In this document: positions 11,501 through 35,573 of the stretch, piece by piece
Numbering within the stretch: position 1 is the first letter of the stretch
Layout of the letters: every line of letters begins with the position of its first letter
DNA from: Ylistrum balloti
Taxonomy: Eukaryota
DNA length: 64,000 nt
Reading direction: 5' to 3'
Assembly (NCBI RefSeq): GCF_031769215.1
Contig: NW_026782163.1
Location: forward strand, 62,001 to 126,000
Notes under the pieces: generated by a model
What the model was told of the DNA's origin: nothing
Database searches by the model: none
What the model saw: only the letters and a program-made list of their open reading frames with translations
Made by a program: the position numbers and the translations under genes

Positions 11501-14500
11501 ATTCATTATCCTTGTTTAAATGTAAGGAAATATTAAACAAAGGGCAGTAACTCTGTACCTGAGAGGATGTGGGCCCTAATTTTTTACCAGTGCACATTGA
11601 TTAGTATGAGACCAACATAAACATCAAGATTCATCATTCTTATTTAACTGTGGGTAAATATATGCTACAGACATGAAAAGACAGTCAATCAATGCATGCT
11701 TACAAACCAGGTATTCAACAGGAAACTGTGAAACTTCCTGTATATATTCAGAGAAGTGATAAAGACAAAGCAGGAGAGACTATCAAGTTTTTCAAGGCTG
11801 CAAATGAAGTTGCAATCTTATCTCTTTTTTCATAACAATTATCTTTTCCTGGATAGGTAAATTCACAATTTTTCCTGATGTGAGATTTCCTTGTCCCACC
11901 CTCTGGATGATAAGACTACACATGCCCCATGCACTTTCTGGAAACAGCTTAGGTGACATCACCGATATAATCCGGAGGTGGAATTACTTTTATGAGATCA
12001 CACATATATACCTAATATCATCTGCTAATGAAATCTTGTGTTATCCTCAAAAATGAAAATCCTGTGTTATCATAAAGATTGAAACTTATCTCCATCCAAA
12101 ACTTACTATTCAACATATGTCTAAAATATCAAAAGTATACTTTTATTTGACATTATATTGGCATGTACACTGGAGTTATATTTTGTGTAAGATAGATCAC
12201 AAAGCCTGAAGCGTCTGAGGTGCGAGTCTTGTCACTATTCATACACCATTCACATCTGTTAGTTTACACACAATACAATTGCTTCACCCTTTTTAAGGGT
12301 CAGAAAAGGGATCTCAACGCTCAGAAGAAGATTATTAAGCAGTCAAACACAAGGCTTACTTAACCTTCCTCCATGAGTTGAGATCCCCCAATCTCATCCT
12401 GAAGAGATGAAAGATTCTTATTAGTCTTCGGTGATTATATCTTTTAGTTACCATTATGAAAGGGAAAGTATTTCTGTGGCAGTGATTTGAAGTCAACTGG
12501 AATAAATACCTGTTATCTGGAGAGAAGCACATGCCAATGATATGACCATGCATGTCAATGATCTTGTCCACATTATCATTTGGTTGGTCATCCGACATCT
12601 GCTCATTTGTTTTAGGAAGTAAACACAATTTGGAGTCAGAACCCTCCACCTTTGCAAGTGACTTGATACGTTTAATACCAATCTGGTGTGGTGTGTAGGT
12701 CTCTGAACCCATTGTAAACACAAGATACTTATCCCTCATGGTGGTATACTTTTTCTCAGATGCGAGTTTGTTTTCACTCAGATTATGATCTGGCCTATCC
12801 ATATCACTGTTTGCTACAACACAATACTTTGGCGAATTTCTGGCAGTAGTGGCTTCCCTTGTGGCTAAGTACTTTGTCTGTAAGGGAGAGCCATACACTG
12901 ACCCATCCACATACATTCCGGAGTGACAAAAGTCCTCACAATACTCCTCTTCATCCTCTTCATCTGACAACATATCCCCTAAGCCCTGACTCTCCTCATA
13001 ACAATCTGCACTGTTACCATCTTTAACACGTTTCTGGCGATCATGCTGGATACAGCTAGTTACTATAGGCAAAGTATTTGTCATCCGACTTTCACTGATA
13101 CAGGTTGTTATCCTAGCACTGGTCAGTCTAGACATATCTAAACCATCAGGTTGGCTTTCTGTCATGGTACCAGAGTGTCTGTGCATAGAACTATTTTTGG
13201 ATGTTGCATTGGTTCTCGAAAGTTTGTCATTATTACAAAAGAGACTTGAGTTTCCAGATTGGCTTGTTACCATAGAAATTGGTTTTGAGTCAGAACTACA
13301 TTCCGCCTGTTCGGAGTCCAGGACAAACTGAATCTCGTCTTGTGCCTGACGATAGTCCTGACCATATTCAATTGTCCCATTACGCCGATCATTATTTTCA
13401 TCTTCATCCAGCTGAATAAATCTGTTTTGAAATGCACCGTTTTCATAAACCTGTACACTCTGGACATTCCGAGCAGTGCCACCTGAAGCTCCCTGTACAT
13501 TTTGGGTCTCCCCAAAGTCAGAATCCTCCACAATGTCATCATTTCGTAGATTACTGTCCACAAGCATGTTAGCTCCTTGTGTACACTTGGTCAAGTGATT
13601 GTCAACCACACTGTCAACACAGCTGTAGTCTGTTTCCTCTGCATAATCTGCTACCATTATAGTACGGATTGAGCTCGCGTTGACATTGTAAAAACGGTAG
13701 AGCCTCATCACCACTGACTCATGTTCCGATTCCGTTTCCTGTGAGGCCTTGTTTAGCCATAGTGTTGAACATGACTGTAACTGTCCAGTCCAGTGAAGGT
13801 TCCCAGACAACAAGTAGTGGTCATTATACCACGTCCCAAATACATCATATGGCTTGTTTATCACACGGGCTTGCAGCTCAAACTCACCTGTAAAGTTTAG
13901 TTAATCCATGTAGTGATTTATAACAATACAATAACTTTACATACACATGAACATTTATATGTATAATATTGATAACATTAAGCCTATGTATTCTATGAAG
14001 CAATCAGGAAATCATTCTATAGGTCATAGAGACGTACTGTAATACATCTCATCATTGTGACATTGCTTAAAAGTTACGGTTCTTCATCTGAACAAATGTG
14101 ATGATCTCCAATCAAGCCAGAAGGTTTCAAGCAAAGTATAATCATTCAGATCATCATGTTATACACAACGAGACAATTTGGCAAATTGCAGTTCCCCTGA
14201 TCAAATGTGAATTTACTTCTGAAGAATGCAGTGTAAATGAACTAAGAAGTAGTGCAGGAGATAGAGCCCAGACAAACTATTTTTAATTTGATGTAGATTA
14301 TAGGTACATATAAAATGTAGGTCAGATTGACCTACTTTTGATGCTTGACAAACCACCTCATTTAAGTGATCCCAAGTCCTAAGTATGAAGTTCAAGTGAC
14401 AAGTAGTGAAGAGGTAGAGCCCAGACTAACTTTTGCTCTGACGAAAGCTATGTCAAAATGTAGGTCAGAGTGACCTACTTATGATACACAACACACACCC

Positions 14501-28086: not shown

Positions 28087-31000
28087 ATGTCTAGTGAAAA
28101 CACCGGAACAGAGTTGGTAAATATGCCTCAGTCAGAGATTCCTGGACAGGTGGCTCAAAAGATACCTACAAAAGATTTGGAGCCGGCACTGATCACTGTG
28201 GAACAGAGTGCACATAAAGATGATGGAAATGAAAACAAAGCATTTCAGGAGGAGGAGGCTGTTAAAACTCAAGAACACAAACCAATGCTTACTTACATGG
28301 ATTTTATGCCAAATTTTATATGTTCAGCTGCAGGACCAGATGAAGCACCTACCTATGCACGCTTTAGGTTGGTAGATACTATTTATGAATAAAACCTGTA
28401 ACTTTCACTTTAATCTAAAATTTTATTCATTTAGATATTCAATAATTATGAAACAATTAAATGTTATTGTTATTGAATTAATCCCTCTTGTTAGCCTACA
28501 TGTAAGTGCACAAGGTGTGTGTCTATGATGTATATGAGCTCAGGCAGGTGACTAGATGACTTCCATATGCTTTCATATCAAAACAAAGAATCAAACCCAA
28601 GTCATCTATATGTAGCTGAAGGCAAGTGTACACTAAAGATCCCACCAGTCCAGGGGTCTAGGGGTATTATTAGAATTTACAATTATTTTCCAGGCATTAT
28701 AATGACTTCAGAATTACCCTAACACAAGCCAAATCTAGTTAGGCCTCCAACTCTTCCTTTCAGCTTCTGAACATGTTTCAGCGGCTAGAGTATAAGTAGT
28801 ATAATCAAATTATGACCTCTGCAGACAGTTCCACCCCTCTGAAGGGGATGCAGGTCACTCCCTCTCATGTCACCAGATCATTGGCGTTTGTCAATGAGAA
28901 AATACCCGGACACCGGATGAGTCACTGAGACAGAAAACCTGTCAACCAACTAACCAATGAAAGGCTTGTGCATTACCATTGCACCAGCAATTTAACAATC
29001 TTTCTTATTCATGATAAAATTTTTAGTCATAAACATTATAACAAGTCAATTCAGTTATATATTACCGTTCTTTATTCTTGTTAAGGTCTGTGATTATTTA
29101 ACATCACATTTACAGCAAGCTGCTACCTATAAAATTTTGAGCTATTACAAAATTAACAAAAGTTCATTGTAATCATGTTATATGTTCTAGATTCATAAAT
29201 TTAAACTTTTACGTGAAATCGTTTTACATATGAATTTTTTGGTTTCAGTCAGTTAAAATGTGGTGTTAACCCTCTTGCTCAAGGTTATTGCTATGAACTT
29301 TTGACCTCGATATATGTAAATACAAAAATTGTTCGGTAAACATAAATGGATCTTTGAATACACATGTGAAAGGATTTATGCAGTAGAGCCAACACAGTTT
29401 GTGTTAGGTTGGTTGGATAATGGGTTCCTTTCCTCTTCACTCTACACAAGAGCAATGTTTTTTTTTTTTTAAACCCCAAACCTTAATTACCAGGTAATAT
29501 GAAATGATGGAACAGTAATAATGGGTTGTGTTTCTTATGTTACAGCTTTGTTGTTGACCAGGCTAACGAGTGGTTGAAAATGAACAAGGAGTTCACTGTT
29601 TGGAAATGTGAAACTGTCAGCTTCAAACTAAACGCCGAAGATCAGTTTGACACTAAAGGAGTATTACATGCAGAATCTTCATATGGAGTTAACAGATATG
29701 TAATGGGACTAAGGTATCAAGTTAAACATTTTCTCTCACATTCCAAAAGTTTTGATAATTGCTGTAAGAGATATACAAGTCATTCAGCATAGCACTAAGT
29801 ATACAGGTTGTTATTTTCGAGGAGTTCGGTTTTAGCTTTTTTTCAAGGATGGAATATCACAAAAAGTAGATACCTTGAAAGTAAAATTAATAGAGGAAAT
29901 TTTCATCCATTTTTATGAAGTTTGTGAGATGGTGAGGAGACACAAAGGTGTATGAATAGCAACTTTAAATACAAATTTAGAATTAGATACAGTAGAGCCA
30001 AACAATGAATGAAACTGCATGAACTGTCCTGAAGGGAAGATGCATTGCTACTGTCAAAGGTATAATGAACATAGCTAGGACATTTCTTGTCAGTGCCGTT
30101 ATATAAAATAACTGCTGATAATTAGACGTGAGAGTAATATAAGCTACCTGTCTCTTGGCTTAAATGAACAAAGGCAGAATCTCAATCTCTGTAAAATGCC
30201 TTTTACCAGTGACGGACCTAAAAATCTTATCCCAAGGATTGAGATAATTGACTTCTGTTCTCTTACTAATTCTCTGTGTTAGTCAATATTCAAGTTGTCA
30301 TGTTAGGCTGATTGTAAGTGCAATCTATTACAATCATCAGAATTTGATAATGTAGACTCCTGTAGTTATTACACATGAATTGTATCTGGTAGTAAGTGTG
30401 ATAAATATTGAAAAATAACAAATTGAATAGATTGAACAGATAACAAATAACAGATTGAAAAAATAACAAAGTGTGAAAGATCCCAAAAACAAATTATTCG
30501 AATAATAAAAATAATTACGGATAAGCCTATTTCATTCTATCTTTTCATGAAACCTAAGCAAAAATCAGATTAGAATTTGAATGATTACAGAACCCTCAAA
30601 TATATTGAATTGGTGGTAAATTTGATTGATTTTACAATAATTGTGAAACAAGTTACTCAACTTATACTGTCCGGTAATCTGTACACTTAATGTTTGCTTT
30701 GATGGAAGAGCTTAAGGGGATTTTGATGTGGGAGAAAACCAGAGTACATGGGGGAAAACCCACAGGGATAGGCATGTGACCCCTGACCTTTTCATGTCCA
30801 TTAAGGATTATACTCCTCTAAGAAGAGAAAACATTCTAGTATTAAACTTTTATACTTATACATATAATTTGAAAAGAGATTTAATGGCATATCAAAAAAC
30901 ACAAAAAGAAAATGATATGTCTGTGTGTTCTCTTTTTTCATGATAGCGCTTTGAAAATTGCTAGTCATTTTCAGTGATTTTGAAAACTAAACTTTAAATG

Positions 31001-34000
31001 CAAATTGAATTGATTTCTTTCATTCTTAAACATTAGAATCCATATATTTCATTAAAGCCTCAAATTTCCACAAGAAATAAAGATTTTATCCATAGAAAGA
31101 AATACTGTAAACATTTTTGAAACTTTACTAACATGTAGTATTTACTGAACTAAAACAATTTTTCAAAGGAAAGCAATAGGATAGTAAAATTTTTAAAAAA
31201 TATTGTCAGAGTTAGCTCTTTTGTTATTTTTTCAGAAAATCCTATAAGTGTCCTTCAGATTAAAAAATAATTAAAGAAAAGGGAATTAAACCCAGGACGT
31301 CTTGATGAAAAGCGATCTGTGCATTACCACTGCTCTACCCAAAAAAAATTGGTGGGAAGGTTAATTTTACAATCACTTAAATATTGAATAAAAACAATGA
31401 TATACAGGACATCATGATCCTTCAGGTTGCTCAAACTAGTTATCATTACATTCTGATATGGGACTTGATGTAACTGTTATTACTGATATCAATATGCTTC
31501 TTTAAATGTTTTAGGCTGTGGTTGGTACCAAGAGTTTCTGACACCATGCCTGTAGTCCAGATTGGATATACAACAGCCATTCCCGGAGAACCTTATATGG
31601 ATGAAGATCAAGGTACACAAATGAAGTGGGAGAAGACACAGGCCATCAGCTCAGGGGGAGGTAACTCAGCACACGCCATGTTAACAACAATGGTAAACTC
31701 AATTATACCCCCTGGAACCAACAATAAAGAAAATATTAAAGAAGAAAAGACCGTGGACCAGGAACAGACACCAGTGACTGAGTTTTCTAATGATGATGAA
31801 CCATCAAAAAAGGACAAAGCAGCAGAGCAGCCTGAGACAGAGAGGAAAGACATTGCTGCTCATCTTTCTGAACCAACTCATAGAGTGTCTGCATCATACT
31901 ATTCTACAATGACCTCAACTGTTAAAGGACTAAACAAACAACTCACACGCAAACCTCTACCAGGTTAGCATCCATTTATCTTCAGATAATTTCTATTCAA
32001 TTTGAATATTCATAATTATCAAAAGATTGTTAATTTTCAAAGGATTTCATTAAATTTTAGCCAGCCGTATTTGAACACCATTGTGAAAATATTAATGCTC
32101 ATTAAATATTGTTCATTTCACAGCTTGTTTACCTTTATTTGCCAAAGTTGTGATCATTTTCAAATTGATAGACTCTCCAGATACAAATGTTCACCATATC
32201 CTTTTTAACTCTGACCAATGCAGATAAGACTGATATTTTTGATGTCATTGTTCTGTTAAGGTGTGATATTGAATGTGGAGAACCTGACTCTGAGAGCATC
32301 CTCTGAGCAGTCTAGGCCACAAATTGTGATGGATCCCGAATGTACAAGCTGGGCCGAGGTGGGCCGTAGGAACACTGTCTTTGTGTTTGCTATCAGGATT
32401 TTCTATCTCAAAGGAAGAGAGGAATTCTGCACCATTGGTGAGTATATCAAATTAAATAAGGTAGAGTTATTACTGACTCAGTTATGTCACTTATTTATGG
32501 ACCATTGGATGCACATGAATAATTCTACCTCTATAACAATAGAGAGAGAATTCTCTGCCAAAATTCTACAGGACAGAAAAACACTTGTATTTTGAAATAA
32601 TAACATGTGTTCTTCCAAAATAAACCAGTTTTGAGTACAGTAGAATGTACAATAAACATTTATTCGTTTCTATTCACAACAAGAATTAATAATAATGCCT
32701 TGAAAATAGTGAATGAAAATGGCCACCCAAAGGATGACATTTTTAATTTATAAAACTGATAAAGTCAACATGTTGCTTCTGTCATGACATAATTAATTAT
32801 TATAATTAATAATAATTAATTGCAATGATATACCAATACTAAGTAGATGCAATAATGCACATAGTAGTAGCTACATCAAAATATAACTGAAACAAAAATT
32901 GTTGCTAACCTGAGTGGAGTTTCCAAAAAAAAAAAAAACCCACAGACTCGCATGCTTACCTCTCTTGAATGTCTTCTCTAGTATATCATCTGTAAAGGTT
33001 CAATTGTAAATAACTTCTGAGCAAAATGAATATATTAAGCATGAGACAGCATTGAGTGCTATAGATGATAGTTAAATTACTGTAACAAATTTTCATGTGG
33101 TTGAACTGTTCTTCAATGAAGGATCCCATGTCCTATATTGTGTATGATCTTATGTATCATATACCTGTAGTATCACAGGATCAGACAATGGATGTGGGTC
33201 ATTCACTTACAGATTACATCAGAACAGGAACTATGGAGCTGATATCACTGCACCAAATGCACAAAGAATGAAGGGATTAGGCAGTTTAAAGAATAATCTT
33301 GGTTTCTATTTCATGTCAAATTTATGAACTTGATCTTCTAAAAAAGAAAAATGTCATGTTAGATATATCACCTATATTTCTAAAACTTGTTTTATAATAG
33401 TCATGTAACATCTGATACTTATATACTAATATGTCACATACAATACATCCTGTATATATTCCTGCCATTTGCTACAGAAGAAACACATTTTGATTAATTC
33501 AGGACAGAATCTGTAATGGATTAATTATCATATGATTTTTTTTAAATATTTCTTTAAAAAAACCCAAAGAAACTAACATTTATTTAAAATTAATGTTGTC
33601 TGTTGTATTGCAGGTTATCATGATGAACTCCCAGACATGCGGAAGTCGGGGGCTACAATTAAGTTTGGTCCTTTCAGCAATGTAGTGTACAAGATGGGAG
33701 CTTGGCTCAAACATCAAAAGGTATGCAATATAATGCATATATGTGAATTTATACTCTGCAACTTTCGAATCAATGATTTTGATAAGCAGAGCTGCACTAA
33801 AAAAACCTGGATTTAACGGTTTTATATTTACCTTTTGGGTGTTTCAGAATATCCGTGTGGTGAACATGCAGAGTGTAGACATACAGTGTAACCTGGACCA
33901 GACAAGTATGTATAACATTTTAATATCTGTAATTGATGACAGCTCTCAGAAGGGTAAATAAACTAAAACTAATCATGCGGTATATATATTAACTGTAGTG

Positions 34001-35573
34001 ACAAACTTTTATCAGTTCAGTATAATTTATTTCCTTGTAAGTAAATAAAACATCAAAAAGCTGTCCTGTCTGATATTCAGTCAGTAACTTTATGCTGGGA
34101 TGACGGGAGGAAAGGGTTGGTCAAAACAATTATTTTGACTGCATGACTTTCCTGGTCACAGTAGTCAATTGTACATAAAAACCAAGAGGTCCCCATGCTC
34201 TTGAACCAGTAATACAGGGCATAAAAGACCTTTTTTAATGAATCATCCATCCCTATTTTAAAGGTTGCAAGGTTTTGGATGGCATATTTAGATATGTAGT
34301 GTCGATATAATGACCAGTAGTTTGCTAAAATGGACAGTCAGCTCTTTGAATACATGGTTTTTAAAGATTTATTCTTAACAACTTCTTCTGAACAATTCAG
34401 AGATTTAGAGCCATGATGATAGGCCAGCAGTAATCTGGAATGAAGGCAAATGATGCTTGTACAACAGAATTTAGATGCTTTTATCTCAGTGAAGCATTTT
34501 CCTGTAGTAATTTTTATACCTACATCCCTTGTCCTCTTTTAAATACAGATGTGTACCAAGTGAAAACTGATGTTTCTGGCTTTATGGAGACTGCTCACCT
34601 GAGCACCAGGTATGCCAAGGTACTGCGTCTGTTTTATGTGACAACAGCTAAGACAGAGATGCCTCCTTATACCTCTCTTCAACTGAAAACACGGCTGTTT
34701 GCCCCAGTTAGACGAGGAGAGAAGTCATTTGAATCCTTCCCAAAAACCATGGAACGGGTCATCAAGTGGCTGGACTATCTGAGTAAGCATTTTTTTTCAA
34801 CTAAGAATTCATTTAATATAAGAATTATTTGGTGCATGTAGTTAAACTGTCTTTCATATTATAAAAATAAAAATTAGTGCTATACAATGTTTCAGCCAGG
34901 ACCTCTATGGCAATATTAATTAGTTTGTTTTGTTTGTAGCAATGCCACCGTTCTTTGTGGAGACTGTTGCCTATCAGATATACACCCAGGGTAGTGGTCA
35001 GGCTGTTATACCAGACAAAGTTGACTGTAGTGTGAACAGAAACTCCGGCCGTCACATACTCAATACCATCAGGTATATAAACAACAAATACACATAACTT
35101 TACAATAAACATATATTTTATCATTGTCAACATTGCATTTAGAGCTATTGTCTGTGCTTACATTTCCATATTGATTAAGTTAGGATTGGGTGTGGAGGGT
35201 AGGGGGCAGATAGTGGTACCTATGTCTGTTCCATTTTGCCATATTTTGTTGCATCTCATTGTCCTTTACCAACCTGAATTTATCATTCAATTCTGTGTTA
35301 AGGGATTTTTATAAAGAAAGTTGTCAATAACACTGATGTTGTACATATATTCGGGGTGCTAATTTTTTAACCGATATACATGTATGATAGGTGTAGAATT
35401 CAACGCTAAACTTTACAATGTCTATTTATTTAAGATTGATAATCATTCTGTATTACTACATGTATTGGTTTTCTTTCAGACTGTATATGCCTTCAGAATT
35501 TATAGAACCACCACCAGAAATTGCACCAGATGTTGCTACTGTTGACCAAGGCTGGGGCTGTTCTATTTCATGA
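28087..35573 (+). CDS. Uncharacterised 566-aa protein with four diverged internal repeats and C-terminal CaaX (CSIS). Coding exons: 28087-28367, 29546-29713, 31515-31963, 32261-32437, 33614-33720, 33848-33905, 34549-34782, 34940-35072, 35480-35573
   Basis: Nine exons with canonical GT-AG sites and compatible phases total 1701 nt (567 codons) with no internal stop. The translation repeats the motif Y/F..P...F..F..VV...WL....V.NVE(T/S)V...(L/I)RL(F/W)Y. I do not recognise the family. Confidence 0.85.
30727..30800 (-). mobile_element. Second SINE-core remnant of the same family, reverse orientation
   Basis: GGGAGAAAACCAGAGTACATGGGGGAAAACCCAC is the reverse complement of a core similar to the one at 14677. 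Confidence 0.5.

Follow-up and report, generated by a model that had tools for sequence, protein, structure and literature searches.

CaaX-prenylated peripheral membrane proteins, which include paralemmin, BROX, INPP5E, and the Ras and Rho proteins with their lipid-bearing tails, end in a cysteine, two aliphatic residues, and a last residue X. Palmitoylation usually occurs at an extra cysteine beside the prenylated one. Other membrane-attached proteins, such as NDFIP1/2, the ARRDC proteins, and LITAF, are adaptors of Nedd4-family ubiquitin ligases and carry the motif PPxY, the ligand of the WW domains in Nedd4-type ligases. At the level of folds, the SHS2 module was reportedly defined by Anantharaman and Aravind in 2004 through its strand-helix-strand-strand order. 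Their work on this module (Anantharaman and Aravind, 2004) is included in the reference list of PMC5684135. The gene LOC132551086 of the scallop Ylistrum balloti is compared here with these systems. It occupies positions 28,087 to 35,573 of a 64,000-nucleotide stretch of contig NW_026782163.1 (NCBI RefSeq assembly GCF_031769215.1, positions 62,001 to 126,000, forward strand), and "the window" denotes this whole stretch.

LOC132551086 is already public, being annotated by automatic prediction as the uncharacterised protein P0001. What is new is a four-fold domain, a conserved prenylation box, a PPxY motif in the sister branches, and a range that covers molluscs and chelicerates. Judged from its sequence, it belongs to a protostome protein family that lacks annotation. 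The anatomy of the protein (an acidic disordered N-terminus, four SHS2-like units, a linker, and a CaaX box) can be proposed with high confidence. Overall, the best reading, held with rather more belief than doubt, is that a farnesyl anchor would hold the protein at the cytosolic face of a membrane, its rigid four-domain core serving as a scaffold or adaptor.

The nine exons are separated by introns that all follow the GT-AG rule, and join into a 1701-nucleotide frame of 566 codons plus a TGA stop. The joined translation is identical to P0001 (NCBI 'uncharacterized protein LOC132551086 [Ylistrum balloti]') at 566 of 566 residues. For the library-wide phmmer search, the query was the exon 7 piece alone (77 residues), which matched P0001 (566 aa) at residues 415-491 with 99% identity; P0001 was then used for the whole-protein searches. 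Immediately 5' of the ATG stands an acceptor-like TTTTCTTATAG, and a non-coding exon upstream is, therefore, likely. The exons and the parts of the protein are distributed as follows:

28087..28367, + strand: exon 1 (aa 1-94, ending in phase 2), acidic disordered N-terminus (aa 1-61) and R1 strand 1
29546..29713, + strand: exon 2, R1 helix and strands 2-4; ends AG|gt within the codon of the invariant Arg150
31515..31963, + strand: exon 3, end of R1, R2 strand 1, scallop-specific disordered insert, and R2 helix
32261..32437, + strand: exon 4, R2 strands 2-4
33614..33720, + strand: exon 5, R3 strand 1 and helix
33848..33905, + strand: exon 6, R3 strand 2
34549..34782, + strand: exon 7, last strands of R3, R4 strand 1, and R4 helix
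34940..35072, + strand: exon 8, R4 strands 2-4; ends AG|gt within the codon of the invariant Arg536
35480..35573, + strand: exon 9, end of R4, proline-rich linker F-x-E-P-P-P-E, G-W-G motif, CaaX box, and TGA
28282..31539, + strand: unit R1 (aa 66-158), interrupted by introns 1 and 2
31549..32427, + strand: unit R2 (aa 162-355 with the insert), interrupted by intron 3
32428..34652, + strand: unit R3 (aa 356-448), interrupted by introns 4-6
34677..35498, + strand: unit R4 (aa 457-542), interrupted by introns 7 and 8
31609..31881, + strand: scallop-specific low-complexity insert in R2 (exon 3; aa 182-272)
35559..35570, + strand: CaaX box C-S-I-S (Cys563), followed by the stop at 35571-35573

The C-terminal units (R2b-R4) are basic, with pI values of 9.4-9.9, and the two disordered stretches are acidic. 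Near the C-terminus, the proline-rich linker F-x-E-P-x-P is conserved. The R2 insert, of about 90 residues, is missing from other molluscs and shows 61-67% identity between scallop genera. It was also observed that this insert stays in frame in four scallop genera, with indels that are multiples of three.

The kinship of the four units was first assessed at the level of single sequences, where Smith-Waterman alignment against 500 shuffles gave a clear signal for R1-R3 (z 8.5), a modest one for R2-R3 (z 3.5), and no significant score for any pair involving R4. Profile comparison is decisive. With profiles cut as unit slices from the family alignment A1 (27 sequences), hhalign linked all six unit pairs with scores of 34-72, probabilities of 86-98%, and E-values of 1e-13 to 5e-6, well above the controls given by reversed templates (13.5 at most) and by 120 column-shuffled templates (24 at most). 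The 24 domain copies taken from the transcripts of six species (four units each) align in 127 columns. The proline after strand 1 and an arginine in the last strand are invariant across them, and a W-L pair at the helix end and a glutamate in strand 2 are common. The gene structure shows a similar regularity. The codon of the invariant arginine is split AG|G in R1 (exons 2 and 3) and AG|A in R4 (exons 8 and 9), both in phase 2, and in each of R2, R3, and R4 an intron falls within a few residues of the turn from the helix to strand 2. Such shared intron positions fit internal duplication. On these sequence comparisons, the four units are diverged homologues that arose through internal duplication.

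Structure prediction provides the shape of the unit. The AlphaFold2 model of the whole protein, built with alignment A1, has a pLDDT of 75.9 and a pTM of 0.74; 303 residues exceed a pLDDT of 90, as do the structured blocks for the most part, and residues 1-61, 182-256, and 558-566 lie below 50. In each unit, a strand and a short, optional strand are followed by an amphipathic helix of 13-15 residues ending in W-L, then by a long, a short, and a long strand. The same order is kept when R3 of the L010 orthologue is predicted as a single domain with alignment A2 (pLDDT of 86, pTM of 0.75). DSSP assignment of both models yields E-(E)-H-E-(E)-E for each unit, with a long hairpin. As modelled, the unit is, thus, a generic strand-helix-strand-strand domain of about 90 residues, with an SHS2-like, two-layer alpha/beta architecture, and the pTM suggests that the packing between the four domains is defined. 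An earlier, sequence-only reading of this DNA had proposed the nine-exon model of 566 residues, quoted recurring motifs for R1-R4, and described four diverged repeats, each with a strand, an amphipathic helix ending in W-L, and further strands. All of this agrees with the present results: the motifs are found in the units to which they were ascribed, and the splice junctions, the profile comparisons, and the AlphaFold2 models point the same way.

The same reading had recognised no named family, and the database searches are equally blank. Pfam searches with the exon pieces, P0001, eight homologues, and the 24 domain copies, up to an E-value of 10, returned no recurring family, only scattered single matches with E-values above 0.01. 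NCBIfam gave no match, and neither the whole-family nor the single-domain profile matched any PDB sequence. Foldseek against the PDB with the whole model and the single domain found no match at E-values up to 0.001, and nothing rose above noise with Foldseek or VIA-align for the same two queries. No significant structural or profile similarity to any known SHS2 superfamily was found. The look-alikes of domain R1 in the protein atlas are unnamed arthropod clusters only. Two leads were discarded: weak matches to Mab-21 in the protein atlas for an exon piece (0.76), and P0031, a bacterial LVIVD-repeat protein (phmmer, E-value of 1e-4, over eight short stretches), which was treated as spurious repeat matching. 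A literature search with the locus identifiers of LOC132551086 and ten relatives, and with one protein accession, retrieved no mention of them.

Chains of GyrI and FtsA appear in the fold-search lists. In a different interpretation, the units could be GyrI-like ligand-binding modules, in which paired SHS2 domains form a cleft, making the protein a membrane-tethered sensor or a sequestering protein. This option deserves little credence: the GyrI-like matches do not rise above noise in a flat list, the whole-model searches revealed no GyrI-like pair arrangement, none of the 24 domain copies has a Pfam GyrI-like match, and the conserved glutamate and arginine could equally form a structural cross-strand pair. 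Scarcely credible is the view that the units are true relatives of dodecin or YbjQ (DUF74), with four copies fused into a pseudo-ring, an idea raised by the sequence-only reading, which found the topology reminiscent of such domains. Dodecin (PF07311) has no Pfam sequence match up to an E-value of 10 and no structural match clear of unrelated folds; for YbjQ/DUF74 (PF01906), there is likewise no sequence match and no clear structural match. Kinship to the SHS2 superfamilies, to dodecin, or to YbjQ is, in sum, not demonstrated. That reading had also missed the CaaX box, the presence of the family in both molluscs and chelicerates, and the PPxY carried by the sister branches.

At the C-terminus, the protein ends G-W-G-C-S-I-S. 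This is a CaaX box, with a cysteine at position -4, an aliphatic a2 residue, and an X residue suited to farnesyl- or geranylgeranyltransferase. Cys563 is conserved in at least 90% of the sequences of alignment A1, and 38 of the 42 family proteins have a C-terminal CaaX box. In 37 of these 38, the a2 residue is isoleucine, valine, or leucine; the exception, P0017, has an aberrant C-terminus that is probably mispredicted. The four proteins devoid of the box also have obviously aberrant C-termini. The LOC132551086 protein is, thus, likely to be prenylated, and its final serine predicts farnesylation. Side features of these tails were also noted. The mollusc A-branch proteins keep a tryptophan two or three residues before the CaaX cysteine. 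Most of the chelicerate relatives P0082-P0103 end in Cys-Cys-a-a-X, and these paired cysteines would, by analogy with doubly lipidated tails, give a two-lipid anchor.

The family extends beyond molluscs. The tick protein P0048, a weak match at first, reaches 323 bits with the family profile. When used as a query, it recovers as relatives unnamed proteins from ticks, mites, one scorpion, and one horseshoe crab, none with a Pfam domain. Compared with the single-sequence search, a word search with the profile of alignment A1 brought nothing further. The mollusc and chelicerate range is a lower bound, coming from one library-wide search with the 77-residue query. A maximum-likelihood tree, which leaves out eight partial or aberrant sequences (P0015, P0017, P0022, P0029, P0035, P0037, P0038, and P0103), resolves three groups, each with 96-100% support:

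Chelicerates: PPSY at the N-terminus; C-terminal box mostly C-C-x-x-L
Mollusc branch B: PPxY-EEVMG at the N-terminus; C-terminal box of the S-S-C-x-I-L type
Mollusc branch A (with LOC132551086): long acidic arm with no PPxY, and NPx[FY] in roughly half the proteins, not in scallops; C-terminal box W-G-C-x-x-S

Every one of the 16 chelicerate proteins carries PPxY, as do three proteins of mollusc branch B. Gastropods and bivalves are represented in each mollusc branch, which implies that the duplication of the branches is old.

The scallop itself has a B paralogue, about 85-90 kb upstream of LOC132551086 and in the same orientation, with PPPSYEEVMG in its N-terminal exon and the C-terminus CTIV. 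It is split on two contigs (loci L003-L006 and L009):

G000:C376:13840-16182, - strand: one part of the scallop B paralogue
G000:C306:4411-5672, + strand: the other part of the scallop B paralogue

Its division between C376 and the start of C306 suggests that these contigs adjoin each other and that the two genes are linked. Haliotis rubra, with adjacent LOC numbers, and Ornithodoros, with a cluster, point to linked paralogues as well.

Comparative data support the nine-exon splice model and show LOC132551086 to be intact and subject to purifying selection. In the sequencing runs of six other molluscs, orthologues of 472-527 aa are encoded by uninterrupted frames on contigs of 1.8-2.8 kb (L010-L015), which must, therefore, be spliced transcripts. 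All eight scallop exon junctions align gap-free with these transcript orthologues, and the oyster orthologue is present on 104 transcript contigs. Orthologues from other scallops are 79-84% identical to P0001 and roughly equal in length. Between the four scallop genera compared, identity reaches 78-97% in the structured units and 91-100% in the C-terminal tail, but only 61-70% in the two disordered stretches. Contig record 7 of the sequencing run X1, from a second individual, differs from the window at 33 positions over 33658-35573, of which three are exonic, while exons make up 30% of this interval (binomial p of 0.004). Two of the three are synonymous, and the third, T492R, introduces the residue found in Pecten. 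The notion that gene prediction has produced a spurious frame, or that the locus is a decaying pseudogene, with repeats of no consequence, could appeal to the search for Ylistrum RNA runs, which found none, and to P0001 being itself an automatic prediction, but it is effectively refuted by the intact 566-codon frame with its eight canonical introns, the similar length and high identity of the scallop orthologues, the full-length orthologues on spliced contigs of six other molluscs (104 contigs in oyster alone), the depletion of polymorphisms in exons, and the conservation of the family from molluscs to chelicerates.

Taken together, these features allow a course of events to be sketched for the farnesyl-anchored scaffold. 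Cys563 would be farnesylated, as its X residue is a serine, and the last three residues would be removed. The lipid would then place the basic domains R2b-R4 against the cytosolic face of the membrane, where they may rest, leaving the rigid four-domain core to act as a scaffold or adaptor. The ancestral form presumably carried PPxY, as kept in the chelicerates and in the upstream B paralogue of the scallop. The pairing of the anchor with PPxY, in chelicerates and in N-terminally intact B proteins, probably places the family in ubiquitin-linked membrane sorting. In the A branch, PPxY has been lost and the CaaX box has shifted from the geranylgeranyl type (X being leucine, isoleucine, or valine) to the farnesyl type (X being serine). 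With both the lipid type and PPxY affected, the partners or the membrane have probably changed as well. That the LOC132551086 protein itself acts in Nedd4-linked or trafficking-linked sorting is a tentative proposal, drawn from its relatives and met with more doubt than belief.

A bolder generalisation, and a rather unlikely one, is that the family represents unrecognised lipid-anchored sorting adaptors of protostomes, the ancestral form of which would recruit Nedd4-type ligases through PPxY. Equally speculative is its extension, according to which these adaptors would combine an undescribed four-domain core with a prenyl tether, and molluscs would have evolved a farnesylated branch with new partners. 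Lipid-anchored budding factors bearing PPxY are the analogue for such sorting adaptors.

Several points weigh against the scaffold or adaptor role. The prenylation is predicted from the motif by itself. The N-terminal PPxY is absent from P0001 and from all 16 A-branch proteins, and NPx[FY], present in about half of the A-branch proteins, was lost in scallops; with neither motif in the scallop A protein, the adaptor argument is borrowed from relatives. No relative with a known function was found by structure or sequence, which leaves the ligands of the domains unconstrained. A search for Ylistrum balloti RNA runs found none. X1, the single run with the locus, comes from a different individual and is genomic DNA, since its contigs cover introns.

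If the proposed reading holds, the units would constitute a new domain family and a candidate Pfam or InterPro entry, with a signature made of the invariant proline after strand 1, the W-L at the helix end, the glutamate of strand 2, and the arginine of the last strand. The prenylated proteins would also gain a new group from molluscs and chelicerates, taxa that include aquaculture species and disease-vector ticks. LOC132551086 is one among many conserved unknowns of animal genomes, and an unusual mechanism is not indicated so far.

Other observations concern intron 2 and the rest of the window. Intron 2 contains a very high-copy repeat (29974-30173), at which the summed contig depth of X1 rises from about 8 to about 3000 and many X1 contigs end or diverge; this jump and these contig ends probably reflect a transposable-element fragment. 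Adjoining it, a 337-bp stretch (30212-30550) is missing from the contig of the X1 individual, which constitutes an indel polymorphism. Elsewhere, by far the longest open frame of the window is located as follows:

12356-13864, - strand: open frame of 502 codons, serine- and acid-rich, with a C-terminal stretch resembling the start of a WD-type repeat

This frame has no Pfam match at E-values up to 0.01, and probably represents a single large exon of an adjacent gene.

Among known systems, the SHS2 proteins (GyrI-like/SbmC, FtsA domain 1C, and the Rpb7 N-terminus) offer the closest likeness in form, as they share with the scallop units a strand, a helix, and a long beta-hairpin, and also occur in tandem. 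Dodecin and YbjQ/DUF74 are single-domain, homo-oligomeric, and mostly prokaryotic, unlike the four-unit scallop protein; they do not match the scallop units in sequence, and their structural scores are indistinguishable from those of unrelated folds in the same list. With the CaaX-prenylated proteins, the scallop family has in common the Cys-aliphatic-aliphatic-X C-terminus, whereas their bodies are unrelated to that of the scallop protein, for which prenylation is predicted. As in the PPxY adaptors of Nedd4-family ligases, membrane attachment goes together with PPxY in the B-branch and chelicerate relatives, where the motif lies in a disordered N-terminal arm; it is absent from the LOC132551086 protein. 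Moreover, these adaptors use transmembrane or arrestin domains, while the scallop family would rely on a predicted prenyl tail and four SHS2-like units.

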